Made by a program: the position numbers and the translations under genes. Under the pieces are notes generated by a model, which was not told the DNA's origin, ran no database searches, and was given only the letters and a program-made list of their open reading frames with translations. This document shows, piece by piece, positions 1 to 53,400 of a stretch of DNA of 64,000 nucleotides. Each line of letters begins with the position of its first letter. Position 1 is the first letter of the stretch. Source of the DNA: Trichosphaerium sp. ATCC 40318 (Eukaryota; Protista; Tubulinea); assembly GCA_038496445.1 (NCBI GenBank), contig JALMLS010000097.1, positions 62,001 to 126,000 of the forward strand. Direction: 5' to 3'.

Positions 1-1596
1 ATGGAAGTTCGCTCTCATCAAGTCTCTCACCTCTAAGAAACGAGATTAGACAGGACTAGAGAAGCAAGAAAGCCAGTTTCAAAGAAAAATAAAACTGGTC
101 TCCAAGTAGACATTTGGTTGCGTTCTGGGTACCTGTGGTAAGCACAGATTGGTTGTTCTGAGGTTGCAATGAGGTATTGTTCACCTGCATCCTTGTTTCC
201 TGTTACTTTGTACAATTCTTCATCAAATTGCTATGGCAAAGGCGTGAGTGAACTGAAAGGGTTATGTAAACGTTTTGCTTTTGAGAAAAATATTTCAATC
301 CATTAAACCCTTCAATGTGTACCTCGAGTTGTGCTACTTCTCCCATTACATCCTTGTTCATAAAGAAAGGTGTTTGGATAGGCGTGTACTCTCTCTTGGC
401 CAAAAACTTCATTCCGTAGTTGATAAGCGCTTGGTTGAGTGCGACACCAGGTCCAGTAAGGTAGTATCCTCTGTGACCAGCTACATTAGATCCTAAATAA
501 CAATTCATATTAGCAAGTAGAACAATGACCACTACGCAGATAAACAAAAACGTAGAAACTTTTTTTTCGACTGAAAAACTCTACTATTCGCTGAGCATTT
601 ACATCAGCACCAGCGTCGGTACTGATTTGAAAACAAAAAAAAAGCGAAATAAAAAAAAAGTGAAAGAACAGCACACACTACCTCTAATAGGTTCAAAACC
701 GCCAATCATGTAAAGAATTTGATGGTGATGGTACAAACCAGGCACTTTTTTAAATTCACCCCATGTTTTTACAACATCATTATCGTGCTAGAACAACATC
801 AGCATGAGCGTCAAAACAAAAATAAAATAAGATCAAAGCATTTTGGTGTTCACGAGAAAAACTTGTTTTAAATTCGGCTGTGGGAACGCACCTCATCCTT
901 GGAGATTGGGCATGAAGGGTGTACAATATTACCGACATGGTTGAGTTTGGCTTCAAGTGCGAGTTTTGTTTCTTGTACTTTTTTAACCAACTCTTGCATT
1001 TTGGCATCTAATGCTTTGGATTCAGCGCGTTTTGCGTTGGCTTCATCCTTTTTTTTCTACAGAGATTATAGGTTAGCCAGACTGGATATTTGGGTACAAG
1101 ATAGACGCGTGTTAACGAGAAAAAAACGTACTTCTTTGAACAATTTGCCCATTTCTTTAGACAAGGCGTTTTTCTGTTTTTTCAACTGTTCTACTTCGAA
1201 TTGCTCTGTAAATGTGTCAGATTGGTGTACATAAGAAAGTATTGAAGTCCGGACGAGTTAAAAAAAATCTTAATCGTGGTTTGGCGTATGTGTAACACTA
1301 ACCTTTCCTCCATTGGGCATCTAGCGCAATAATTTCATCTACGATGGCAGGGTCTTTAAAACGCGCCTTTTGAGAATCTTTTACTACTTGAGGGTTACCT
1401 GCTCATGTGTCAGCACGTTTACGCTATAAAAATATGGTTTGTTTTTATTCTTGGCTGTTTTCGCAAGAAATAAGGCAACACGTTACTACTATAGGCGTAG
1501 GAGTTTTTACTGTCGTTCAGTTCGTAACGCACCGCCTTTTTCCTTTCGGAACAAGTTAATATCCAAGCCTGTCTTGATTTGGTTTGATTTAGACAT
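1..1596 (-). CDS. SARS: Cytosolic seryl-tRNA synthetase, multi-exon, 3' end runs off the window
   Basis: Exons encode [70 protein letters not shown] and [15 protein letters not shown], which are SerRS motifs; ATG at 1596. Confidence 0.95.
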
Positions 1597-1906
1597 GTCG
1601 TCGTTATTGGTGGGTACAGAACAGTAAAAACGCTGGCTTAAGCGAATTTTTTCAGAATAAATCTTCCTTGTTACATTTGTGCCCAATTTCTTTACTCTAC
1701 AAAAACGCCTCTTATAACGTTGTGTGCTACGCACAGAATACGGTGTAAATAGTGCTCTTCTAGCAAAAACTGACATTTTTTTTTAATTTAACAAAGGTAC
1801 ACGATTACCCGACAGGTTTTAGCGCATCATGCATGATGCAATTGGTTACCCGAAAAAAACCACACAAAATAAAACCATTTTTAGTCATAGCAAGTCACGC
1901 ACGCCA

Positions 1907-1919
1907 GTTCAGTGTACCT
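1907..1919 (+). repeat. Left target-site duplication GTTCAGTGTACCT of the non-LTR element
   Basis: Identical 13-mer at 11675-11687, immediately after the T25 tail. Confidence 0.93.
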
Positions 1920-2138
1920 GGGGGATGATGACAACTCACCTTTCCGTGGTATCCCCTAATAACAACGCTATGAGCTCGTATAACATAAATACGTTGCAAT
2001 GGATCACATTGGGACTTGGTTTCGCGGCTACTAACAAACCAGGTTATACGGAGACGCAATCGTTGGCCGAGAAGTTGTCCGCGGGACCAGGTACAGTGAT
2101 GTCCCCGCGTAAACAAAAAATTCGCTCGCAAAGAGTTG
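1920..2138 (+). ncRNA. HDV-like self-cleaving ribozyme (putative) at the retrotransposon 5' end
   Basis: P1 GGGGGAT(1920-26)/ATCCCCT(1951-57) with a first G-U pair; P3 ACC/GGT; L3 TTTCCGT; P1.1 TT/AA; P2 CAACTC(1932-37)/GAGTTG(2133-38) preceded by C-A-A-A (C2129). Starts at the first base after the TSD. Confidence 0.72.
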
Positions 2139-5100
2139 AAAAGGCTGCCAAGCTAACTAATATGGCTGAGGAGAGGTCTCAGAATACACCTCAAGGCAAA
2201 ACCGGTGGTTGGGCAGAAAGACTTAAATGGTCGCCCAGCTGGTGCCACACGGCTCAGGCTACGTGTCGTGATATAAAATACGAGCAGTATAATTCAAACT
2301 CCCATATTTTACTCTGGCTTTTATGGTTTTTAAACCTCATTGTATCAACAACAATATCAATACTAAATAAAAACAAAGTTATTTTTCTCCTAATAATTTG
2401 TATTGGTTTTTTGCGCGCGCATAAAGTTGAAATCACGTTCCTCGAACCGGTGGATATAAATTTCTCACAAAACACTGCAAATCAACATCTCCTTACACCT
2501 AACACTTATAGAGGACATCAAAACGCAATAACACAGAGCACAGAATTCCAGGTAAATCTTAATTTTTATTCAGTGATTATTACGAAATTAAAAACACAAA
2601 AACCTCTTTGTTTTTCCTGTAATCGCTCAGAATCCCATTCACAGATCAAGGATTTGCACCACAAAAGTCCATACCTCGCAAAACATCACAAAGCAACAAG
2701 CATGGCCGCTCCAAAGAACACCTACTTTCAAGACAAGAAACTCAACCGTCGCTACTTTGAAAACTTAACGAAAGAACAAGCTGAAGCAGAACTTGCACTC
2801 ATCACAAACCCTGTCCTCAAAGAATCCTACCGAAACTCTTTAACAGCCATCCTCAAGACCAAAGAACAAGAAGATGTACTGAAAAGACTCAACTCAGCAA
2901 CTGCTATAGCTCAATCCATCATACTTGAACGTAATGCAGATGGAACCTTAAAAGCAGCTATTGAAGATGAACCTGAACTCATGGACTACATGAAAGAACA
3001 AGATGCCTTTTTCGCAGAAGAAGAGGAAGAAGCAACCGACTCACGTTTCAAGATCCAATGTGTAGACCATTTCTCCAAATTAATGGTTTATTCTGGCTCC
3101 TTTGTTTGCGCTTCAATGGCTCTAGCAACAAATTCTCCTAATCCATGTGAGCTTGCATTAGCATCAATGGAAAAAGAAAGATTGGCACAAATAGGAAGTC
3201 TAGTCAAGGGCTGTTTCTTCGAATGGAACAATTGTACTTTTCTCATTTATGGAACCGACTACACCAAACTTACAGCAACGCAAACCATTGACTTGGCAAA
3301 AGAAATTCAAACGCACCTCAAGATCGCAAAAAACCCTTGTCGTATTCACCAAGTTTTCCTTCCAACCTGTGAAGACATGGCTGATACCACCTGCCAAAGG
3401 AATTTTTTTAAATTCATCTACAACTGTGTTGTTAACCGCAAATGGGTAATCCAACTACCTGAAAAATTCTTAACCACTACTATCACTAACGCTTGGCCAA
3501 CCAAATATATCCCTTTTGTCGAACATACAAGAGACTTCGAAAACAGGAACGGCAATGTCAAAGTCTTTGAAATCACGCTCCATGTCTTGGAACAAAAAAA
3601 TCATGTAATCATGGCTAACTCAAGCGGTATTAACAAGCTCAAATTGATGATTAATGGCAAAGCGACTCTCTTCCCAATCAGATGTAATGTTCCCTTTGCT
3701 CGAAAAATTTACATGGGTAAACTAAGCTCCAAACATGCAGCTCACGATGTAGCAAGAATGCTCGCATACACTGGTGTACGTTGTCCTTTTAATTATTATA
3801 TTTCCTCTTTCAAAAAACTAATACCTTTCAGATCTTTGTCCACTCCGTTGTACACGATTGTTCAGCCAATGGAGGCTCAAGAACTGATAACTACATCATT
3901 GAAACTCGCAACTCCAACCAAAAAAGTGACCTCATCAATGCATACCTCTACAAGCACTTTGTACTTGAAGTTGGAAATAGATCCACTGGCGTTTTCTTCT
4001 CGGATGAAAGAATCATCAGATAATATAACAAAGACACAAGCTGACGTCTTCATACCCAAATCCCTCTCACTAATAAATTTCCTTGTTGTTATGTCTTGTT
4101 TCTTGTTACTTTCACTGTTCATACAAGCTTTCAGTTTCACAGGTAACTACATAAGGAAAACGATAAACATAATTTACTTCTCTTTGTTGCTCTCTCGTAC
4201 TCGTCTCCAAAACAAACTCTCTCACAAACGAAACTCCAAAAGTAAAAAGCTTTGTCCTACAAAAAAACTCTCTCTATCTTCACTCTCAATTTTCTTTCTC
4301 CTTCTGTTCCTTTTACTTTCGTGTACATGTAAGTTTACTATTATAAAAAGAAAATATACCAGTACAAAGACAAAGTCTAGCAGAATTCGTAAACAAATAA
4401 ACATAATCAACCTTCTTCTCATCGTCTGTCAACCTCTTATCTACATACAAGCAAAATTTGTTAGTACACTAAAACACTTAGACACTACCTCCATAAAAAA
4501 GAAAGAAGTAAAAGTATTCAAGCACACCAATAATAAATCAATTACATTTAGCATTAACAATTCACGCATTCTAATAGATCCGACATCACCAACTAAAGAC
4601 CTTTATGCTAAAGCAATCAGTTCAAAATTGATAAGCCACAATGCAACTTTAATCCTTAAAACTAAACCATTACGAAAGAATACAATCCTAAACAGTTACA
4701 ATCTAAACAACTACAATGTATTATCAGTGATTGAACCAATTATCGGTGGTGGCAGATTCAAAGACGACATCAAAATTATTTCGTGGAATATTCGTGGTGC
4801 CTTTGAAAGAAAAGCAATGGAGATTGCTAGAACTTTGAAGAAACAAAAAGTTGACATAGCTTGTCTACAAGAGATACACCTGGACATCGAAGAAACCCAT
4901 AACCAGAAATTTAGAATGTTAATGAAAACACACTTCAAAAACTACGATTACTCATTCAACTTACCAACACTTCATGAAACAAAATCAAGATATGTCACTT
5001 ACAAAGCTAAAAAGATACGAAAAAAAGAAACTAACATATCAATCATACAGCGTAAAACCTTAGAAATAAATCCAAACCGTGCTAAACCTTTAGGAGGTTT

Positions 5101-8100
5101 ATTGACATTAACAAAAAAATCAATCTCACATAGAGTAAAACACATTAAAACTAAATACCCGTTTGTACAATCAATCATTGTAAACGACAGCAGTAAAAAA
5201 TATCCTACACTACTCAACAATATATATATAAGTGCATACCATATTAATTCAAAACTTGAACAACTAGAGATACTCATGAAGTCCATATCAAACCTTAGCA
5301 CCAAGCATAAATTTGCGAACAAAATATTCATCGGTGACTGGAATATGGCTCAAACAGTAGAAGATAGACAAGCCCTAATTGACAACAAACTAGTAAAATG
5401 TCACATATCTGAACTGAAATACCTAAAAATAATAAACACATTCAAGGAAGGTCTTGGTCTGTTCGATCCAGTATCCCGTTTACCCAAAGTAAAACGTAAA
5501 TTTACCTTTAGTCAAGTAGTAGTTAAAAAAAACCCAACTAGAAAATTTCTAAGATTAGAACGCATCGACTATCTACTCACATCTAACCTAAACAATATTA
5601 AAAAGTTAATTACACTCACTAACGAAAATTTGTCAGACCACAACCCCATCCTTTGTACGCTATCAAAATCAATTGATCACCAAGATGTTATAGAGTATAA
5701 ACCAAGATCAAATCCTAACCGACTAATCACAAGAAACATAGACTTAAAAGCAATACTTGCAACACTTGACACATCAGAAATACAAAAAGAATTTAACTCA
5801 GCAAAAGCAAGATCAGATGACATATCAGTAAGTAGCGAATACAACAGTTTTGTATACATGCTAACCAGAGAGATCCATACACATGTAAAGCAATATACAA
5901 AAAAGAGTAATAAACCAAGGAAACAAGACTTCAAAAATAATGGTGAATATGTACGTATCGATTCAATGATCAGAAAACTTAACAAATTACGTAAACTAAC
6001 TTTAGAAACCACGCTAAGAATCAGTAGAGTCAACACTGAAACTAATGAAATCAACAAAAGAATAACACGTGATGGTGACAACCCAAGAATACAGTTATTA
6101 CCCACCTTTTATACTAAACCGTTAGAAAGAGTAAATCTACGTGACACCATAGACAAGAATCTTAAAACATATAAAAAATGGCTACGTGGTTGCAAACACT
6201 CCATGGACATGTCAAGAAAAAGATATTATTGCAAAGCTATGACGGAATTAACATCAAGAGCGTTGTTTAAGAAAATACGAGACATAAAAAAATATGAAAT
6301 TAATAAAGGTAAAACTTCAGAATTTGTTCGTTACATTGAAGGTCAACTTAATGGTGTCAAAACCCTCTTCTTTAATCAAAACTCAATCCTACAAGTATTC
6401 TCAGAGAAGTGGAGTTCAATCTTTGCAAGTAAATACCCTCACCCAAACCAAAAACCAAACAAGTATCAAACAAAAATCCCTGCAGCGCTCACTCCAGCAT
6501 CTTTCAAAAAATTAAATAAGAAATACAACAACACCATATTCTACAACGATATTACAAAAAAAGAAATGCTAAATGCAATACACAAACTCAAGGCCTTCAA
6601 AGCACCAGGTAACACAAATCTAGGTATGGAAATATACAAAAATCTACCAACAGAGATCGAAGACATGCTCCTCACTTTATTTAACGATTGTAGAACCTAC
6701 AAAACAATACCAGATATATGGAAATCTAGCAATCTAATATTTCTCAGTAAAAAAGGTAACCAACATGACCCTACAAATTACAGACCCATAGCACTTCTTA
6801 ACTCAATGTATAAAATATACACACAAATCCTAAACAACAGGGTAGCAACATTTGTAGAAAAAAACAAGATAATGAGTGACTCCCAATTTGGTTTTTATCA
6901 AGGACGAAACATCAACATGGCACAAAGAACATATAGACATATCATAGAAAATGCCGAAGCAAACAATAAAGATATCTTTGTCATATATATAGATTTCTCA
7001 AAAGCTTACGACTCAGTCGAATATTGGGCTTTAGATCACGCTCTAAAACATCAAGGATTTGACAATGAGATACGTCAGATAATACTAAGTTTATTCAAAG
7101 AAATCAAAGCAGACATCATTTTACCTATGGGCAAAAGACCGATTAACATTGAAAAAGGAGTTAAACAAGGGGATGGCTTTAGTCCAATACTCTTTACACT
7201 TTTTGCTAATGTATTAATAAAAGAAATTGAATCAATGAACTGCGGATACCATATTCCTAACACCAATATAAAAATACCAATAATAGCATATGCTGACGAT
7301 ATAAAACTAATAGCAGACTCATATGAAAACCTTATGAAAATGTTCAATAAACTACTAGAATGGTGTGACTTCTACGGCATGAAAATCAATGTGAAAAAGT
7401 CAGCCTTTTCATACATTTGTAGAACAGACCCACAAGCTCTTTTCCCACCGCCTAAAGCAAAAAATAACCGAATATCCTACTTAAAACCAGAAGAGTCATA
7501 CAAAGACTTAGGTATTCTAATAAACCTGAGACTAGACGCCACAGACCAAACGTCAGAAATCAAAAGAAGGCATGCTAATGGACTATCCTTAATAAGATTT
7601 AAGGGCTTTAATGCAATCCAAAAGACTACCATAATTAACAGAGTCATTAACCCAGGAATCACTTTTGTAACTAACGCAATGTTAATAGATCCCAAGATAC
7701 TAAAAAAATGTGATGATAACGCAGCAGACTTACTAAGATCAGACGCCAAAATCCCATGGAGACTAAAACCTGAAAGAATCTTTTTGAAACATACTGGACT
7801 TGGACTCGAACCATTAACTGACCTACAAAACGCTGGTTTTATCAGTAACTTGATCTCAAACGGTATGAACTGCACCAACAAAACAACAAAACAAATCTCA
7901 AACGCTAGTATACGACTAGCTCACCAAAAGTTTAATCCAAACCATACAATATGCCAGGCCACACAAATTTGTAAAAGCCTTGGAATAAAGATCATACACA
8001 AATCGGATGTATCTGAAACAAGAACAGAACATAAAATAAATAGAATGGACATACAAACCTTCAAAAACAACTGTAACATAGTAAACTCAAAATATGTTAT

Positions 8101-8221
8101 GGCAACAGACGGATCAGTAACTTCGAAAGGTGCATATTTCTCAGTGGTACTCAACACGATACTCAAGTTCAACCGATCAGTCTTATTCGAACAAACATCT
8201 ACTAACGCAGAACTGGAAGCT
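1925..8221 (+). CDS. Retrotransposon read-through polyprotein, 5' part (leader, ORF1 N-terminus, hydrophobic linker, ubiquitin-like domain, APE, RT, RNase H N-half)
   Basis: One uninterrupted frame (ORF track 1829..8230). The first ATG inside the element is at 1925, but the real start may be 2702. The frame ends at the DNA-transposon insertion. Confidence 0.85.
2702..4023 (+). CDS. Retrotransposon ORF1 (coiled-coil + RRM-like), spliced: 2702-3775 joined to 3832-4023, 421 aa
   Basis: ATG 2702 (MAAPKNTYFQ). Intron GTACGT...CTAATACCTTTCAG at 3776-3831. The spliced frame completes an RRM-like pattern, KIYMGKL..HDVARMLAYTG|IFVHSV..DNYIIET..KSDLINAYL..TGVFFS, then TAA at 4021. Confidence 0.7.
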
Positions 8222-10197
8222 CAGGTCTAAAATTCTCGAGCTGTTTTTATGGTAGATACCATGAATTTGTGGTATAATTATACCATTGATTCCAATTTTA
8301 TACCACAAATTCCAGTATAATATACCATAAATCAAAGGATTTATACCATGAAACAGCCAAATTATACCATAAATATACAGTAGAAAGTGTGAATTTATAC
8401 CATATTTTTTCACCTGAAAAAATGCATTATATGGTATAATTCTACCATAAAACATGGTATAAAACACAGTATAATACCATAAAGTCTGGTATATTATACC
8501 TTAAAACTTGGTAGATTATACCACAAAACCAGGTGTATTATACCGTGTAAAAACTGTTCTAAAAATAAAAACACATTTATTAATACATCTTTTTTTTGTT
8601 TACATCCGTGACCTTTAGTTTGCCCATGTCCTTTTTTGCAGTGATCAAATAACCTTAAAAGAACAGATCGTACTTGCTGTAAGTGCATTGAATGGATATA
8701 GCATGAAACCTAAAAGAAGAGTTAGCGCCGGCTTGGTTTCTTGTACACAAAATAAATAGTCGTACAAAAATTGCTGTTTTGTTGTGATGGCAGCACTGAG
8801 AGTACCAAATGACCTGCACGGTGAAGCCAAACCAAGACTAAAACAAAGAAATGAAAATAGCTACCAACCTCATCGGAAACGAGTTCTAGTGGAATAGTAC
8901 CTGGTTGGGCGGCTAACACGTTTTGTTTTTTTTATATCACCTATTAAGCCTGTAAAACCTATGGCAAACAGCTTTAAAACAACTACTTTCTAGCATACCT
9001 TGTGTTGTGTGGGCGATAAACTGGTCAAGACTTAGTTTTATGCCCTGGCTTAGCCAATTAGTTTACATTATCACTCGTAAGGTCAACGCATGGGTGCAGA
9101 GCCTAAATGCTATCTGTTCCGGCAAATGCGGGCGTTTAGTAGGAAAAAAACCAAAAAAATCCAAAAAAATCCAAAAAAAACCAAAAAACTCGAAAAATGG
9201 GTAGGCTCTGAAACAACTTTGCCTTATAACACTAATCGTGCGGTTTAACACACATTGGGGCATATATCAAGAATGTCAAAAAAAAATAAATAATTTTGCT
9301 CCTGATTTGGTAAATGAGGCTGTATGGCGTTGATTGAGTGTAAAAATGCCCATGGAGGGGAGAAAAAAATGAGAGCCGGAGAAAAAAACCTCCAATTGGA
9401 GGTTTTTTGCGAATGGGCATTTTTCAAGCGCTACACGCGGTTTTGGTGTGTTTACCACTGTAGCGTTCTAACATGGGGTATACGGAGTGGTTTTTTCCTC
9501 AAATACCATCAATCGGAGAAAATTGTCCAATTTATCCCTAAAACGCCCGTAATTGGGGCGCGTTACCAGATTTCTCTCTTAAAACTGTTTTTCACACATT
9601 TATATGCCAATTATGTTCAATAACGGCTACTGTCAAAGCATTGTGTGGTATGGCGTTTGCATAGGTCCATATGCTATTAAATCAAGTGCAGACTAAGTGA
9701 GCTTTGACTAACTTATACTTATACGGTATAATACCACAGTATAATACCACATTTTATGGTATAATTATATGGTATAATGCACGGTATACAATACTTTAAA
9801 ATGCAGTATAATACCATGGTATAATACTGTGTTTTATGGTATAATTATATGGTATAATGCATGGTATAATATACTTTAAAATGCAGTATAATACCATGGT
9901 ATAGTACCATGTTTTATGGTATAATTATATGGTATAATGCATGGTATAATATACTGTAAAATGTGGTATAATACCATGGTATAGTACCATGTTTTATGGT
10001 ATAATTATATTCTATAAATCGAGATATGGTATAAACATGGTATAATGGCTGTTATACCATTTGTCCAAAAAACATGGTATTATACCATGTTTTACAGTAT
10101 AATTATATGGTATAATTATGGATTATACTGAGCTTGTACCATAAAAGGTGATTATACCATAAAATATGGTATTATACCATGATAATTTTCAGACCTG
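8222..10197. mobile_element. Non-autonomous TIR DNA transposon (1976 bp), CMC/EnSpm-like architecture
   Basis: Termini CAGGTCTAAAATT and AATTTTCAGACCTG (inverted, one indel). 2-bp TSD CT (8220-21 and 10198-99). Dense subterminal ATACCAT/ATGGTAT repeats in both orientations. No transposase ORF. Excision restores the RNase H frame. The superfamily call is tentative. Confidence 0.85.
9752..10010. repeat. 80-bp tandem repeat (about 3.2 copies) in the right subterminal region of the DNA transposon
   Basis: TTTTATGGTATAATTATAT recurs at 9752, 9832, 9912 and 9992. Confidence 0.9.
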
Positions 10198-10199
10198 CT

Positions 10200-11564
10200 A
10201 TTGAACTAGCTCTAAAAATAGCACCGCTAGAAGTTGACATAATGATTTTAGTAGATTCCACATCAGCTATTAATGGCATTGAGAACTGGAAAGACAAACC
10301 AATCAATGTCCAAAGAAAAGTAGATCATGCACACACATTAAATAGAATACATCAACAGCTCGAAAACAGGTATGGTACAACAACCTTTGAGTGGATACCA
10401 AGCCACACAAAAACTGATAAACAAAAACGTAACAGACCCAACATTGCAGAAAGAATTGCAACCATAGAAAAGAAATATACAAAGAAAACAGCATCTCTTT
10501 TCATTGATCTAAACGATATCGCTGATAGAACGGCAGGGATATCTAATGTACCAATATCACCATCAACTAAAATACCCATTGGCAGTGAAGATTGGGTTAT
10601 CACCCAAGCGACAGGTACAACACAAGGTAATATATTTAGGAAGCTCAAATCCAAACAACATGATAAACACGTGTTAAATTTACAACACAATGCTTCAGAC
10701 TATGGTAGAACAAGAGAAAACTTAATACTACCGCTATCATCATATTCTGCAAACTCTCACCTTGACATTCCGATAAAATTATGGCTCCTTAAGGTACGTA
10801 CAAATACATTACCTCTAAATGAATTCCAACATAAACGAAGTAAGACTAAAGGTCCCATCCAAGCTTACCAACTAAGTAACCAAATAAAGTACCCTAATGG
10901 TTACTGTACACTATGCAAAAATAGAAATATACAATGTACAGAAACCTTTGAACATTTTTGTACATGTGACAAAATAGAAACAATAAACGTGAAGTACCAC
11001 ACAAATAGGATCATAAAAGAATTCTTGAACAAAAAAACACCTTCAACTGATGCAATAGCAACATACAACAAACATGCAGGCGGTAACAATCTTTTCTGCA
11101 AATCAAAATGGCCCACAAAAAGTAAGATACCACCCTCGAACGATCAAATAGAATTAGCAAAACTTGGCAATACACAAATAAATAAAAACATGAAAGACTT
11201 CAAAGTTTCACCTTGGTACCTCACAAAAAACACCAACAAAACGACCCATTTCAGAGGATCCCAAGGATACGTTACAACTGAATTCATACAAGAATTAAAA
11301 CAAAAAACAGGGAAAAATAACACTAACCTCATTAATGCACTTGCAAGACGCTTAAACAACATGTATATCACAACCCTTTATGCCAAATATCGGACTAGAT
11401 GTCACAAAACGCATGCAATTAAAAAGACTATCGGACAACACACGCCAATGCATTATGTAAGGTGGCAAGCTAAACAACTGAAAATGAAACAGTTCTTTCC
11501 CATTACCAACGCTATACCACTATTCCCAAACATAGTTAACAATACAAATAGGATAATTACGTAA
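10200..11564 (+). CDS. Retrotransposon polyprotein, 3' part (RNase H C-half + zinc-finger region)
   Basis: IELALKIAP..ILVDSTSAI..FEWIPSH..NDIADRTA; LWLLKVRTNTLP..CTLC..ETFEHFCTC. In frame with the 5' part once the insertion is removed. Confidence 0.9.
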   Translation: MELALKIAPLEVDIMILVDSTSAINGIENWKDKPINVQRKVDHAHTLNRIHQQLENRYGTTTFEWIPSHTKTDKQKRNRPNIAERIATIEKKYTKKTASLFIDLNDIADRTAGISNVPISPSTKIPIGSEDWVITQATGTTQGNIFRKLKSKQHDKHVLNLQHNASDYGRTRENLILPLSSYSANSHLDIPIKLWLLKVRTNTLPLNEFQHKRSKTKGPIQAYQLSNQIKYPNGYCTLCKNRNIQCTETFEHFCTCDKIETINVKYHTNRIIKEFLNKKTPSTDAIATYNKHAGGNNLFCKSKWPTKSKIPPSNDQIELAKLGNTQINKNMKDFKVSPWYLTKNTNKTTHFRGSQGYVTTEFIQELKQKTGKNNTNLINALARRLNNMYITTLYAKYRTRCHKTHAIKKTIGQHTPMHYVRWQAKQLKMKQFFPITNAIPLFPNIVNNTNRIIT

Positions 11565-11575
11565 CATTTAATAAC

Positions 11576-11631
11576 ACAGCCAACCCAACGCTTCGGCGTG
11601 GCCCTATGGTGGCTAGAGGTGGGTTGGCTGT
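11576..11631 (+). other. Structured 3' UTR element of the retrotransposon (multibranch stem with a cUUCGg tetraloop)
   Basis: ACAGCCAACCCA (11576-87) pairs perfectly with TGGGTTGGCTGT (11620-31), enclosing ACGC-TTCG-GCGT and a second short hairpin. Confidence 0.75.
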
Positions 11632-11649
11632 ATAAAGATCGTTATTGAC

Positions 11650-11674
11650 TTTTTTTTTTTTTTTTTTTTTTTTT
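11650..11674 (+). repeat. Poly(T)25 3' tail of the retrotransposon
   Basis: T run between the 3' UTR and the right TSD, on the coding strand. Confidence 0.9.
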
Positions 11675-11687
11675 GTTCAGTGTACCT
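11675..11687 (+). repeat. Right target-site duplication GTTCAGTGTACCT
   Basis: Matches 1907-1919 exactly. Confidence 0.93.
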
Positions 11688-11783
11688 TCACAAACAGACT
11701 GAATTAGTCGTACGTGAAAGCCACTGAAACGCTACCCTGTACCGTGGTATGGTTTAAGAGTTTAGCTAACAAAAGTGAACAAC

Positions 11784-14700
11784 ATGTCGGAGTCACGGTC
11801 ATCTAAGAAGCATCACAAGCGTAAACGCTCCAAAGCTACAACAAAACATCCCGACCTTGAAGGAGAAACATTGTCTGTCGGCTCAAGTGGCAAGAAGGAG
11901 AAGTTTGCAGAGAGTAAATCAAACGGAGAAGCCAAATCAAAGAATGGAAGTAATCACGACAGCAGAGATCTAGGGAGCTCCATGAGTGAAAACATTACTA
12001 CGTCACAAGACAGAAGCAGCAAGAAAAGCGACAAAGCAAGTAAAAAAAGCTCAAAGCAAAACAGCTCTAAAAGTTCCCAAAACCTGGACAAGAAAGCCGA
12101 AAAAGAAGAGTCACGTAAAGCTAAAAAGAAACAAAGCCAAATGACGCTTGTAACATCAGGAGACACTACAATTCGCTTCGAAGGCGCTACCAAAGGAGTA
12201 CGTTACCAAATTATGGTTTCCGAATATCGTCAACATGTTTGTAATACAACGAATACTAATAATAATCCATTAGGACGCAAAAGTATTGCGTGTGCCTCAA
12301 GTGGAGGGATTCTTGTACAAATACACCAACCTTGCGAAAGGTACGTTCAAAATTAAGGTGTTTTTTGTTATTTTAATTTTTGACCTTGTGTACGTCGCCT
12401 GTAACATTATACTTACGTTGAGTTTGCTTTTAGGATGGCGTAAACGTTATTTTATCTTGGAGAGTGGTATTTTAATTTACTACAGAAAAAAGAAGATGAG
12501 CAATCCTAGAGATACCATTAATCTCGTATCCTTTTTTTTTTTTTTTTTTGCCAAGCTTTTTTATGAATTTATTGCAGTTGTTCGATCTTTTTTGAAAATT
12601 CTCCTTAACATTGTAAAGGCGCGAGCTGTAATAGTTCTATCTAAGAGCAGCAAGTGCGAATTTACTATTAATACAGATAATGCAGTGTTTCACCTTCGTG
12701 CAAAGGTAAAAAAAACCGGGAATTCGTCAATACTTTGACAAAAGAATCAAAAAACTTTTTTTGTTTATCAGAAAACGTGTCGACAAAAAACGAGCAAAAA
12801 ACGAACACAAACGCGATGTTTTTATGCGTCATTTTGTTTCTTTGCTCAAAACTTTATTGAGAGTAAGGTATTAATCTTCTTTTATTAGACTAGAGCTATT
12901 AAAGACAAGTGGGTTGACGCTATGACGAGATCGAAGAGTGTTATTTCTGATCTAACATCAAACGATCGTATGAGTTCATTGAGAAGCCCTATTACTGAAG
13001 GTACGTGTTTCTTTTACACGTTTTTTTTTTTTCTCGTGTTTTAAGGTGTTTGGTTTTATTTCGTGTTTTAAGGTGTTTCTTTTGCGCTTTTGTTAATGAT
13101 TATACCTATAGGAGATGCTTTAGCTTCTCTTAACGAGAAGATAGCTGAATCTAAGGATCTTGAAAAGAGCTTGGCTAAATTGTTGAAAGATTTAAATAAG
13201 CAGACAAATGAAGAAGGAAGTAGTAAGAAAAAGGGTGATAAGAAGAAGAAGAATAATGGTGATATTACTACAGTAGATGGGCATAAGTTTGTTGAAAAAG
13301 CGGAGGAATACCTCGGCGCAGCCCGCGGTTTATTGAGTGCTGCAGATGATGCATCAGCTATTTTACAAAACCATACGCAAGTATTACGACAAGTAGATCG
13401 CTTGCAGGTTGAAAAAGCCATTCTTATTGCAAAATTACGAAAGATTAAAAAGAGCGATTATGTACGTGTCTTAGCTTACTATAGGGCAATAATATCATTC
13501 TCATATACTAATATATACTTAGTATGGTAGAGAAAAAAGTAAAGGAAGGAATACAATCGATCCTGACTCGAATTCTGACGATATGTTTGTAAGCTTGTAT
13601 TTTTTTTCTTTAATATTTCACGTTTCAATGCTTATTTTGTTTTTTTCAAGAAAATGGACGAGGAAGAAGAAGAGGATGATGAAGAAGATGAAAGTATGTC
13701 TGATCCAATACAACAATATGGATCACCTCTCGACGGCAGCGATAGCGATGAATTCTTTGATGCTGAAGAGCCTTCCATGTCGTTTTATGATGCAGTTGAC
13801 GATTCTGTTCTTTTATATCGTCGTGGTTCTCAGGGATCTTTTGCAAGAGAAGTCTTGCCTAAAGAAGATTTACGTAGACAAGGTGGACCTACCATTGTCC
13901 GTTCTGTTTCTGAATCAAACTCACTTGTTGAGCGAGCTCACTCTAGGCGTATGTCTGGTACGTATTTAATAGATTGTTTTATGGGTTGTATAGCAAGAAA
14001 CATGACTTGGGTACTTATGTCGTTTTTGTGTAGAGAGTAGACAACGCAATAAGGCAATGAACTCTCCTGCACGTCATAGATCAGTCAGTGATGGTACTGG
14101 CGATGATATAGAGAGTGTTCACCATGAGTCTATGAAAACGTTTGAAGACACTATGAAAGAAGCTGGCCAGGTACTATTTAAACAAAAAAAAGCGAAACAA
14201 AGAAAACTTGATAGCTGTAGCAGCGGAAAATTTGTAACAATGTTTTCTAGTTCAATGAATTTTGGGATTTTGCTAACAAAGTTGTAGATTAAAAGGAGAA
14301 CCCAGCTCCCATACGTTGGTAAAATACAAAACAAGCCAAGTCTTCTTAAGATTCTAAAGGATGCTGTACGTTCTCTTTCGCACACGTAGTTGCTCGTCTC
14401 TACGCATCTATATTTTGGTAATTTTTGACTTTGTTCATGTTAGATTGGCAAAGATTTATCTCGTATAACTATCCCAGTACACTTTTCCGAGCCACTGTCT
14501 ATGTTACAGCGTCTTACGGAAGATGTTGAATATTCAGATCTACTCGATAAAGCAGCGGCCGAGGATGACCCAGCTAAGCGTCTCCTCTGGCTAGCAACCT
14601 ATGCTATATCTCCTCACGCAGGTAACAACAATTTCTCATCGGCCTTGTTTTATCACTTACCTCGGTTTAGCTACCCTTGACAGGACAAATAAGCCATTTA

Positions 14701-20647: not shown

Positions 20648-21551
20648 ATGGCTGACGGTGACGACTCACTCATTGGTAATTTCTTGGCCACTGGGATAGC
20701 TCAAGCCAAGAAAGCAGTTGAAGAAGATGTATTAGGGCATAAACGACCAGCTCTTAATTTCTACATACGAGCGCTCGGGAACATACAAAAGGCGCTTAAA
20801 TGTAAGCGTAGAGCGTTTCACGCTAAAATACAAGATTACGTAAGTTACTGATTATTTATTCAGACCAACAGGACCCACACATTAAAGAACAGATAAAAAC
20901 CAAACTAGTGACGTACTTACAACGCGCAGAGGAATTAAAAGCTGAAATTGAAGTAATGGAAATGCCAACACTCCCGTCAGTGCCTTCAGGTACACCTAAA
21001 AGTAATATTGAGACGAAAAGTAATCGTTGTGGCGCAAAGCTTTCCATTTTAGCTGAAAATCACTTTTTTTCTCCAAGTCGTGCTTGTTCTGATTCCATCG
21101 TAGCCCCAAATCATCCAACAATACCAAAAATCCCCCAAAAGCAAGGCATAACCACAGTTAATACATCACATAACGTACAACAAATGAAACGCGATTTCAA
21201 GCCAGAATTGGATCCAGGACCTCCAGCATCAAATGGACTAGGTGCAAACGATTTTTTGAAGCAAGGATTAGAGCATGCCAAGTATGCTGTTAGTCTAGAT
21301 GCAAAATATATGGTAAAGGATGCATTGCAGGCGTATATAAAGGCTCTCGAATATTTTACACTTTCTCTGAAATGTACGATTTGGAGTTGCAAACTCCGAC
21401 TTGTTGAGTTTTTTTTTTGGTTTTTTTTGTGCTTACTGTTGGGTTCGTAGATGAGAGAGATCCTCAGCGAAAGATGCTTATTAAAGAGAAAGTAACAGAT
21501 TACGTAACACGTGCTGAAACTCTGAAGAGAGTACTTGAAAGGGACTTGTAA
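20648..21551 (+). CDS. Tandem MIT-domain protein, multi-exon
   Basis: Two MIT repeats: AQAKKAVEED..ALNFYIRAL..IKTKLVTYLQRAEELK and EHAKYAVSLD..ALQAYIKALEYF..ERDPQRKMLIKEKVTDYVTRAETLK. Confidence 0.85.
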
Positions 21552-50496: not shown

Positions 50497-53400
50497 TTAG
50501 AACAATAGAGCAATAAGAGCAACAACCAAAAAGAATAATGGTTGAACGAATGAAACACCGCTAGTAGAGGTAGGTGCTTGCATTCTGACATCAGCGGAAG
50601 CAGATGTTGCTTGTGAAGCAGGAGTGGTGATCTCCAAGACAGATTTCTTTGTGAAACCTGACCATTGGACTTCAATGGATTCACGCATTGTCCACCATGT
50701 AGCAGGCTCGTTAGGTCCAATGTTGATATCAACATCAGTTGGGTCGACAATACAGCAGTATACACATGGTTTGTCGCAGTCACCTTGTGGTACAACAACA
50801 CGTTGGCATACAGATGTTGGGTATTCAACAAGAGGAGCAGGTGTACCGGTGACCAAAAGTCTTTCACCGGCAGAGAATTTTGTCAAGACGAGGTCATCAA
50901 TAGCTGGGACACCTTCGCAAGCAACGTTTGTTGGGTTTGTTGCTTTGACTTCGAATCTGAGTTTCATGTCATCAGTACCAAAGAGGTATGTCTTGATGGT
51001 ATCAGACCAGTCAGATACGTAAGATGCTAGTTCAACACCACCGACAACGACTTCTTCGCGGATGTCATTGCAAGATTGGGTACCCACAATATCGACGTTG
51101 AGTTCAGCTGGTCTGGTCGTGTTGTTGACACAGAATTCAGGCCACAAGATACGAGCACCAGCATCACAAGTGTAGTGAAGGTTGGTGAAGATGTATGAGT
51201 ATCTTGTAGAGAGCATGTCACACTCATCGAAGAAAACACGGATTCTTTGTGTGCAAACTTGTTCGCCCAAAGTGGTGGTTGGGTTGGAGTCGTTGTATTG
51301 ACCATCACAAGTGTTCTCAATGACGTAGTCAACTTCCAAAGGAGATCCAGTGGATTGACGTTGGAGTTTACCAACACCAACTTCAACGAGCTCGAAAGGA
51401 GCGCGGAGACCAGTCTTAACTTCAAATTCCCTGTACAAAACGTGTAAGTAACACAATAAGGACAGTATTTGAAAAAAAAAAGCTGTTGTGGAGTGAGCTA
51501 CGTACCAAGAACCTTCAGAAGCTTGTAGGTCACCATTGGAGTCAAATAGAGGGTCAAGAGAGTACTTCAAGAGTGGGATGACAGCAGCCCATTGTACATC
51601 AGGTGGAGCAACGTAATCGACGGTAACTTCTCCAGTGAGAATCCAAGGAGTGACGAGAACGATTCTGTGTTCGTCACCAGCAAGACGAATAGATTGAACA
51701 CCGAGGGTGTGAGCAGATACGTTGTAGAATCTGTCAACAGAGAACTCGAATTCATAGACTTTGAAGCAAGTGCCGGAGGCACACAAATCTGGGTCACAGG
51801 CGGAGTTGGTAGGGCTGGCTTCAGGTTGGTTGTTCTCGGTACAGTAAACACGAGTAGCACAACCGTCAGCGACAAGATCAGCGACAGGCCATTGAGCTTT
51901 GTATGTTGATCTGCAGTCACGTGTAAAGTCAGGTTCTTTGACTGTGTAGTGTGTAGAGATGAGAGGTGTGTAGTTGCAAATCTTTGTGTCTGGTCTTGGG
52001 ATTGTAGAGTACTTCTCAACAACGTAAGGCTTGAATGTAACAGTTGTGTTCAAAGCAAAGTTGTGAGTATCTTGCATAATTGTTTCTTCCCATGGAGCAT
52101 CGATATCAAGTGTCAAAATACCGTCTCTTAGATCAGCATCAATGTTTGTGTCAAACAAAGATGTGAGAGGAGATACTTGTTGTGGAACACATGAGACACC
52201 GAGATTTTCAATTGCAGTCTCTGGAATACATTGACCTGAGGTAATAAGAGTGAGTATAAGCCACAAAAGAGTAGGAGTAAACAAGAAGAAGAAGAGCAAG
52301 AAACCGTACCGATGTAGTGTGAGGATCCCAAGACAAGATTAGGATCAAATGTTCCTCTGTGATCCCAAAAGTTATTAACCATAGCAACCGGATCATTGAT
52401 ATCCAACGTAAGTGTGTGGTTATCAATGGTAGGTATATCTCTACACTGGGTGCCGGAAATAGGTATCCTAAAGACACCAGTGCCGTCATCAACAAGAGTA
52501 TCAGATACATCATTAGAAAATCCAGTGTAATAGAACCCGACGCATGATGTTGCAGGATCGTTTGTGAATTGCATGTCATTCTTTCCTGAGTATTGGACAG
52601 CAGCGCCAGCGCTTTAAAAAACGAGTTAGAAACACATGTTTCGAGGAAAAAGGTTGAAAGATTTTTTCTGGAATTGAGCTCTCTTATTTGACAACGTACG
52701 TTGGAGCACTGTATTGATACTTTCCGGCAACTTGTGGGAAGAAAGCATCACCAAGGTCACAGTAGTCGACACAAGATGTTACGATTAAGTTCAAATCTCT
52801 TGTTGCACCAGCAGGTTGTGGTGGGTTAACAGATTGAATCCATCCCCATACAGATGATTGAGTGAGATTAGCACGGTAACCGGTACCAATAGCATGAGCA
52901 AAGTTACGAATAGGCTCGTTTGGATTTTTACCTTGGAATGAGACACTAGAAGGATAAAAATAAGTTCAAGAAAAAACAACAGAAAGCAACAAAAAAAAAC
53001 ACAAAATAAAAATGTTGAAGATTGGGAAAAAAAAAATCCAGCGACAGAAAGGGTTTAGGGCCGTACATTTGTTCGAGAGTGTTGTTGATTTTTGCCTTGA
53101 ATGTACCAGAAGCAGATGTTGACTCCCAGTTAACTGTAACAGGGTTACCACCGCTTGAACCACCAGATCTTGGTGTAACGCGCTGGAACTCGATAACGTA
53201 GTTGAGTACGTATTGTCTGGCTTGAGAAATATCCCAAGCAGTAGCAGAGTTACCGTTGTTTGAACCAACACCACCGTAGATTGTACCGAAAATGGTCATT
53301 ACTCCAGTATCGTTTGTTGCTTCCCAGTAGACACGGGTATCAGCAAGTTGTCTACCATTTTCGTGGTAGTTGCAAGAAAATACAGCCTTTTTACCATCAC

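Follow-up and report, generated by a model that had tools for sequence, protein, structure and literature searches.

The window analysed here, 64,000 nucleotides of contig JALMLS010000097.1 (positions 62,001 to 126,000 of the forward strand; assembly GCA_038496445.1, Trichosphaerium sp. ATCC 40318), contains near its left end a full-length retrotransposon without long terminal repeats (a non-LTR retrotransposon), and all coordinates below are those of the window. Judged from its sequence, this element is a genuine, recently inserted, full-length long interspersed nuclear element (LINE) of the apurinic/apyrimidinic endonuclease (APE) type that also encodes an RNase H. How LINEs control the ratio of their first open reading frame (ORF1) protein to polymerase (pol), and how they ensure that the right RNA is copied, is understood in few families only. 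A previous reading of this DNA from its letters alone (the sequence-only reading) had credited the element with a 5' ribozyme, a single frame open over its length, an intron that switches the frame within ORF1, a ubiquitin-like domain ahead of the enzymes and a poly(T) tail. Here, we describe an in silico analysis of these five features. Four of them hold; the ubiquitin-like domain is unproven. The features of the locus are as follows.

1907-1919, plus strand: target-site duplication (TSD), 5' copy GTTCAGTGTACCT, an exact 13-bp repeat of 11675-11687
1920-11674, plus strand: full-length non-LTR retrotransposon, 7777 nt of its own sequence and a 1978-nt nested insertion
1920-2079, plus strand: hepatitis delta virus (HDV)-like ribozyme fold, a nested double pseudoknot with a large P4, found by a strict descriptor; predicted cleavage 5' of G1920
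1925-2701, plus strand: leader, open in the ORF frame, with AUGs at 1925, 1928 and 1970 in frame; no codon-position bias
2702-3775, plus strand: ORF1 exon 1 (orphan protein), 358 codons from ATG 2702; coding signature in frame 2
3776-3831, plus strand: spliceosomal-type intron, 56 nt, phase 0, GTACGT...CTAAT...CAG, 45% T
3832-4023, plus strand: ORF1 exon 2, 63 codons and TAA, read after splicing in the position mod 3 = 1 frame; main frame also open
4024-4340, plus strand: ORF1-ORF2 spacer, without coding signature, main frame stop-free; sole in-frame AUG at 4091
about 4538-4750, plus strand: candidate ubiquitin-like segment ending in IIGG, unproven; GGG at 4745-4753; phmmer matches in PDB
4754-5650, plus strand: AP-endonuclease domain; IISWNIRG 4775-4798, SDH 5633-5641; Exo_endo_phos, BLASTP match to the relative L001
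6749-7465, plus strand: reverse transcriptase (RT); RVT_1, NYRPIAL 6776-6796, YADD 7289-7300
8102-8221, plus strand: RNase H, N-terminal half; ATDGS, TNAELEA; aligns with the homologue P0089
8222-10199, no strand assigned: non-autonomous DNA transposon (8222-10197) and one copy of its TSD, recognised by terminal inverted repeats (TIRs) and flanks; splits RNase H
10200-11564, plus strand: RNase H C-terminal half, Cys/His motif (10902-10967), C-terminal region and stop; RNase_H, P0089 alignment
11568-11648, plus strand: 3' untranslated region (UTR) stem-loop, then a UGUAUAAAGAU box; minimum free energy (MFE) -35.1 kcal/mol, z = -4.96
11650-11674, plus strand: T25 tail, about 10 nt after the UGUAUAAAGAU box
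11675-11687, plus strand: TSD, 3' copy, an exact match to the 5' copy

The element and its relatives

The exact 13-mer GTTCAGTGTACCT at both flanks sets the limits of the element at 1920-11674. Within these limits the frame with position mod 3 = 2 (frame 2, the main frame) contains no stop from 1820 to 8228, as compared with 165 and 171 stops in the other two frames up to 8228. When the nested insertion is removed, the two parts join into 2099 + 454 = 2553 amino acids with 0 stops, the same figure that the sequence-only reading had given. The two ORF pieces that flank the insertion were searched separately throughout. Pfam recognises RVT_1 in the element ORF with E = 5e-35, Exo_endo_phos with E = 7e-4, a value below the curated cutoff (residues 984-1253 of the ORF counted from 1829), and, in the piece downstream of the insertion, RNase_H with a weak E = 2e-3. 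The APE assignment draws in addition on an alignment of the region with the APE of P0001, from GR..DIKIIS..CLQE, and on the presence of the SDH motif. The motifs IISWN, SDH, NYRPIAL, YADD, TDGS and AELEA and the Cys/His cluster are all intact. Thus, the view of this DNA as a TSD-bounded LINE is borne out by exact 13-bp TSDs and by APE, RT, RNase H and Cys/His domains; the RT is of the non-LTR kind, the APE is N-terminal, a 3' tail is present, and there are no long direct repeats in the window.

The insertion that splits the RNase H has the TIR CAGGTCT[A/G]AAAATT, a TSD of 2-3 bp (CT/GCT) and three 80-bp tandem subterminal repeats at 9721-10033. It is rich in GGTATAATACC palindromes, which give rise to spurious microRNA (miRNA) matches in Rfam. 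Excision of 8222-10199 (1978 nt) joins ...TNAELEA to IELALKIAP..., and the uninterrupted relative P0089, on contig L003, reads AELEAIELAL, exactly as at the excised junction. This copy of the LINE is now disabled by the DNA transposon in its RNase H.

Homologues that carry both APE and RT number 88, and identities to the homologues of the two pieces run from 31 to 47%. The best full-length protein matches (31-34% identity) come from metagenomes, and the C-terminal piece is matched by P0089 with 47% identity over 93% of the query. On contig L003 the 3' end of the element is followed by a gene, for a transcription factor, whose start encodes a fungal Zn2Cys6 motif. A scan with the RT alignment returned only relatives of 24-36% identity, and scans of metagenomes with the C-terminal alignment and of viral contigs returned nothing. 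The detectable relatives are uncultured sequences, and the lineage to which they and this element belong is probably fungal; the Zn2Cys6 gene beside L003 and the style of the host introns described below make a fungal host likely, though not proven.

A predicted intron within ORF1 and the continuous reading frame

A generic fungal-type intron scan of the whole element yielded 3776-3831 as its sole candidate. The 5' splice hexamer of this interval, GTACGT, is the same as that of host introns in the window, where the two strands have 43 and 44 occurrences and about 13 would be expected on each, an enrichment of about 3-fold. Host introns (12340-14250 and the whole window) measure 60-180 nt, are T-rich and often start with GTACGT; one of them includes a T18 run at 12532-12549. 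Two further sets of intron-like signals in the element were examined and set aside: the stretch 2552-2630 (GTAAAT...CAG) has no branch-site match and no frame evidence, and the GTACGT hexamers at 5951 and 10794 lie in A-rich coding sequence and have no 3' signals.

The proposal of a frame-shifting GT-AG intron in ORF1 is supported by these splice signals together with a change in coding frame at the same place. Codon-position composition gives a coding signature in frame 2 over 2702-3775 and in frame 1 over 3832-4021, where the third positions of frame 1 are 3% G and 43% C. The frame-score difference over 3832-4021 is -0.278 bits per codon, as compared with a minimum of -0.055 among 1384 true coding windows, and this outlier starts right after the intron and ends at the frame-1 stop. 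The stop at 3790 in frame 1 is not followed by another before 4021. Splicing would join whole codons and give an ORF1 product of 421 amino acids ending at the TAA at 4021; if the intron is retained, the main frame stays open from ORF1 into APE-RT-RNase H. The intron is still present in the genomic copy, whose template was therefore unspliced RNA.

The change of frame could in principle arise by other means, namely a -1 shift or slippage of polymerase or ribosome at the A6 run at 3812-3817. Frame 1 is open from 3793 and the run falls inside the interval, as this explanation would have it; the in-frame context, TTC AAA AAA CTA, is however not a canonical X XXY YYZ site and is followed by no obvious stimulatory structure, and the interval is T-rich and bears the full set of host-type intron signals. 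We regard slippage as very improbable.

The protein encoded by ORF1 has no Pfam match. No homologue of ORF1, the spacer or the ubiquitin-like stretch was found by a word-index search of 5.8e9 proteins or by an exhaustive phmmer search of residues 33-976 against 1.84e9 representative proteins, and the ORF1 proteins of the relatives L001 and L084 have no detectable similarity to this one or to each other. The sequence-only reading had spliced RNA produce an abundant RNA-binding ORF1 protein: the intron and the ORF1 stop at 4021 agree with an ORF1-only product of splicing, but because no homologue was found the RNA-binding role stays an assumption.

The openness of the main frame extends well beyond the recognisable coding regions. 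In the leader (1925-2701), 12.6 stops are expected and 0 are seen, and 0 of 20000 simulations were open; the first three AUGs of the element all lie in the main frame, and the composition of the leader scores about 0. Across 3776-4495, 12.8 stops are expected and again none occurs (0/20000 simulations stop-free); codon-position bias here shows the frame-1 signature over 3832-4021, none over 4022-4340, and an ORF2-like signature after about 4340. The main frame of 4079-4440 in and beyond the spacer encodes three long hydrophobic, transmembrane-like stretches that would be part of any ORF1-pol fusion. A comparable arrangement is seen over 1-4907 of L001, a relative of 31% identity. Its leader exceeds 3 kb and is stop-free in the frame that ORF1 and ORF2 have in common; between these two ORFs stands one TGA (4905-4907), followed 7 nt later by an ATG. 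The open leader of L001 includes tandem repeats of roughly 333 bp (1070-2290), and the first 97 nt of its contig repeat 3854-3950. We take the continuous frame to be a selected trait of this lineage. Two possible reasons for it may be offered as ideas, that translation starts from the 5'-most AUGs of an uncapped RNA, or that premature termination on the template RNA is avoided.

An ordinary two-ORF LINE, in which the intron has no regulatory meaning, ORF2 is reached by re-initiation at AUG 4091 and the open frame is partly luck, would account for several of these observations. AUG 4091 follows the ORF1 stop by 68 nt and is in the ORF2 frame, codon bias is absent from the spacer, L084 has separate, overlapping ORFs, and in L001 a stop between ORF1 and ORF2 is followed by an AUG. 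With re-initiation at 4091, only 3776-4090 needs to be open by chance, for which P is about 0.003. Free of coding constraint, 4091-4340 would require a further 0.024, and the 780-nt leader, which is also open and in frame, has P below 1e-4; moreover, the copy keeps the intron, so unspliced RNA was at least the template. We consider the two-ORF explanation unlikely. The same AUG bears on the proposal that pol is made only from the RNA that is to be copied. That the template was unspliced and that its frames are open stands; to regard the fusion as the chief or sole origin of pol is an inference, given that re-initiation at AUG 4091 could supply pol as well.

The ends of the element and its surroundings

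The first 160 nt of the element can be drawn as an HDV-like ribozyme. P1 (1920-1926/1951-1957) has 7 bp and begins with the pair G1920.U1957; P2 (1930-1936/2073-2079) is a perfect 7-bp helix; and P3 (1938-1940/1948-1950), of 3 bp, abuts the 3' strand of P1. L3 reads UUUCCGU, whose U1 and G6 correspond to the reverse-wobble partners in HDV-like ribozymes (PMC3774820). Positions 2-3 of L3 (UU) would form P1.1 with the AA at 1958-1959, directly after P1. P4 (1963-1967/2061-2065) is about 100 nt long and is closed by CAACG/CGUUG, and J4/2 (GCCGAGA) has cytosines at 2067 and 2068, the HDV-like plan requiring a C here (PMC3774820). The MFE structure for 1920-2085 contains P1, P4 and a P3-type hairpin and keeps both P2 strands unpaired. 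An alternative version with a small P4 (C78AA) was dropped, having no P2.

A strict HDV descriptor finds base 1920 as its sole match on both strands of the window. Its background is 16 matches in 32 Mb of simulated sequence, or about 5e-7 per nt, and there are 0 matches in 426 kb of other loci. A loose descriptor was too permissive (47 G.U-start matches in 128 kb) and was replaced by the strict one. A search for HDV-like folds in the leaders of L001 and L002 gave nothing convincing. A match that starts at the very base after the TSD is hard to ascribe to chance, and the unique strict-descriptor match supports in silico the fold that had been seen at base 1. These observations support a model in which a 5' HDV-like ribozyme would cleave the element's transcript at base 1. 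Such 5' ribozymes are already known in R2, L1Tc, RTE and Baggins (PMC3774820, PMC3185411), and large peripheral domains in them have been described (PMC4908430).

The fold also bears on whether this is simply a decayed copy, with a frameshift mutation in ORF1, frames open by chance and a coincidental 5' fold. In favour of decay, the copy is the only one analysed and already bears a nested transposon; against it stand the perfect TSDs, 2553 stop-free codons, intact catalytic motifs, the low background of the descriptor and the failure of all 20000 simulations to give an open frame. We judge decay to be extremely improbable.

At the other end, the fold of the 3' UTR is a long stem whose top is branched. 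L003 has the same 3' architecture (stem z = -2.9, then the UGUAUAAA box, shared with this element, and (TTTC)6 as tail), and three of its basal-stem pairs differ at both positions (C-G to G-C, A-U to U-A and C-G to U-A); these compensatory pairs were read from two single folds, as MAFFT/RNAalifold misaligned the 5' arm. The 3' end of L084 carries (CCGTGTAA)3 where this element has T25. The simple-repeat 3' ends are located at 5583-5800 of L084 and 2001-2126 of L003. The T25 at 11650-11674 is thus where it had been reported, and from these comparisons the poly(T) is one form of simple-repeat tail in a lineage that does without poly(A). No report of a pure T25 homopolymer LINE tail was found in the literature searched, and the tail is seen here in a single copy.

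The LINE occupies a gap of about 240 bp between divergent host genes, at 1507-1776 on the minus strand and at 11784 to about 16000 on the plus strand. The downstream gene, 110 nt away and in the same direction as the element, has a PH-like exon, an FFAT-like EFFDAEE and KPFNPLLGETYE, and is oxysterol-binding-protein-like. Placed in this way, the element could be transcribed by read-through. Elsewhere in the window are an MIT-domain exon (20908-21447, plus strand), an An_peroxidase exon (35150-35617, minus strand) and a 600-amino-acid ORF without Pfam match (50497-52299, minus strand) that is possibly another mobile element.

Proposed precursor processing and life cycle, and known systems

A further proposal of the sequence-only reading was that unspliced RNA makes a long precursor from which a host deubiquitinase or ubiquitin-like (UBL) protease, cutting after a GG, frees APE-RT-RNase H. 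A GGG does stand 8 residues before the first conserved APE strand, in the order IIGG and then GRFKDDIKIISWN, and GG is found only three times in the 2099 amino acids. By BLASTP, APE homology with L001 starts at GR just after IIGG; the start of P0002 (a GTG, set by a prokaryotic gene caller) is near the same point and serves as a rough boundary guide only. Codon bias indicates that the segment before the GG is truly coding. In a phmmer search of all PDB sequences, ubiquitin variants were the sole matches, in a nearly gap-free alignment from ubiquitin residue 17 to G76 with about 28% identity over 60 residues and in register to the GG. Retained positions are L43, I44, F45, L50, L56, Y59, N60, I61, L67, L69 and GG.

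The E-values of these matches, 0.5-0.8, are at background level, and a control segment from L001 gave an unrelated match, to TRPA1, at E = 0.93. Pfam ubiquitin-type models had no match at E <= 10 in four cuts of the segment. Two single-sequence AlphaFold runs reached a mean predicted local distance difference test (pLDDT) of 38 and 45, of low confidence, and Foldseek with the resulting model found no meaningful match. The segment has no homologue in the proteins searched, and nothing similar precedes the APE of L001, the nearest relative for which upstream sequence exists. The tail of the segment, EPIIGG, lacks the arginines of LRLRGG (R72, R74), which in ubiquitin are used by ubiquitin-specific proteases. 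No ubiquitin-like domain in a non-LTR element was found in the literature searched, whose coverage was incomplete.

Taken together, the chance that the segment is a true beta-grasp fold is near one half, release of pol by a protease at the GG is well below that, and release by a deubiquitinase is speculation; we could not establish either the domain or the deubiquitinase step as originally claimed, and the full model is in our view unlikely. A broader version, in which a retained intron, a diverged ubiquitin-like GG module and a host UBL protease act on an RNA that is uncapped, cut by the ribozyme and U-rich at its tail, so that a retrovirus-like logic is assembled from host parts and pol is tied to the template RNA, is quite unlikely. 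A genuine module would add a third way of releasing the enzymes of a LINE precursor, next to 2A peptides and OTU-type proteases. The homologue P0004, a GC-rich LINE protein, begins with MHPNPGP (a 2A-like NPGP), followed by an OTU-protease-like DGHCGFYA ahead of APE-RT, and illustrates other means of precursor processing among LINEs.

The best explanation of the locus, to which we give somewhat better than even odds (about 0.55), is a ribozyme-headed LINE with an intron-based switch between ORF1 and pol and a T-rich tail. Transcription would read through into the element, which lies just downstream of the intergenic region of a divergent gene pair, and the 160-nt ribozyme would cut the transcript at element base 1; we propose that the start of the full-length copy at G1920 reflects this cut. 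Partial splicing of the 56-nt intron would then act as a gag/gag-pol-like switch. Spliced RNA would yield the ORF1 protein, and unspliced RNA, open from AUG 1925 to 11564, would yield a fusion carrying APE-RT-RNase H and also serve as template. The GG-ending ubiquitin-like module before APE is a possible, unproven device to free pol. Finally, by analogy with stringent-type LINEs, RT may recognise the 3' stem-loop and start on the T-rich simple-repeat tail without poly(A).

Several findings weigh against this explanation. The folding energy of 1920-2085 is ordinary (z = -0.4), P1.1 consists of two A-U pairs and is weak, and the strict descriptor, although composed of literature-style features, was written after the fold had been seen, so that the true odds are weaker than the background implies. 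No Rfam HDV or other ribozyme family was found in 1-13000 at E <= 10, where only spurious miRNA-like matches appeared; a 100-nt P4 and an A-U P1.1 depart from the curated Rfam HDV-type models. The relative L084 has the ordinary overlapping two-ORF layout, and AUG 4091 leaves room for re-initiation. There is no second copy of the element within the window, nor any close relative with the 5' half in the protein, metagenome and viral-contig collections searched; statements on the 5' half therefore rest on one sequence.

Among known systems, L1Tc is the closest in architecture, a likeness of layout: in it, a ribozyme at base 1 and a single ORF go together with a 2A processing peptide that precedes APE-RT-RNase H (PMC5814959). 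In L1Tc/ingi of Trypanosoma cruzi, as proposed here, an HDV-like ribozyme in the first bases frees the element from read-through transcripts, and a single long ORF, a Zn nucleic-acid-binding motif and TSDs are shared as well (PMC5814959, PMC3185411, PMC3383444). Both have a short device for processing upstream of, and in frame with, APE-RT-RNase H, although here it is only a candidate. The present element does not belong to L1Tc/ingi by 2A peptide and poly(A) tail: L1Tc has a 2A peptide (DxExNPGP), a poly(A) tail and a 77-nt ribozyme that doubles as promoter, and has neither an ORF1-like body nor an intron, whereas this element has no NPGP and ends in T25. R2 likewise has a 5' HDV-like ribozyme at or near the element junction with a far-upstream ORF, an RT that recognises a structured 3' UTR and not poly(A), and large peripheral inserts in its ribozyme (PMC3774820, PMC4908430). 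R2 differs in its restriction-like endonuclease, in its specificity for 28S ribosomal DNA (rDNA) and in having no APE, RNase H or ORF1; the element described here has an APE and an intergenic, non-rDNA target.

The pattern at the 3' end is that of the stringent-type LINEs (CR1, L2, I and similar), which have a conserved 3' stem-loop and a short simple-repeat tail without poly(A). The (TTTC)6 of L003 and the (CCGTGTAA)3 of L084 fit this pattern, and a pure T25 is unusual for it. Ubiquitin-fusion processing is known from ribosomal ubiquitin fusions and from the ubiquitin inserts before NS3 in cytopathic pestiviruses, all of which rely on cellular ubiquitin, nearly identical and ending in LRLRGG. 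Were the module real, the likeness would lie in a beta-grasp that ends in GG directly before the enzyme to be released; the identity of about 28% and the EPIIGG tail set it apart.

The claim of an apparently new expression system was overstated in that its pieces have precedents in L1Tc, R2 and copia, but no LINE intron switch and no ubiquitin-like domain were found in the literature searched, again with incomplete coverage. On the sequence of this one copy, an intron switch in a LINE looks new, and the conjunction of a 5' HDV-like ribozyme, an open frame across the whole element and a T-rich tail that is not poly(A) occurs in a probably fungal lineage that is scarce in databases. In copia/BARE LTR elements, splicing sets the ratio of structural protein to polyprotein: unspliced RNA is both polyprotein message and template, and spliced RNA encodes Gag only. 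The copia/BARE intron removes the pol region, whereas the 56-nt intron described here would shift ORF1 into a stop. A pol frame that depends on intron retention would be a simple way to link expression to the choice of template, an arrangement known in spirit from copia-type LTR elements.

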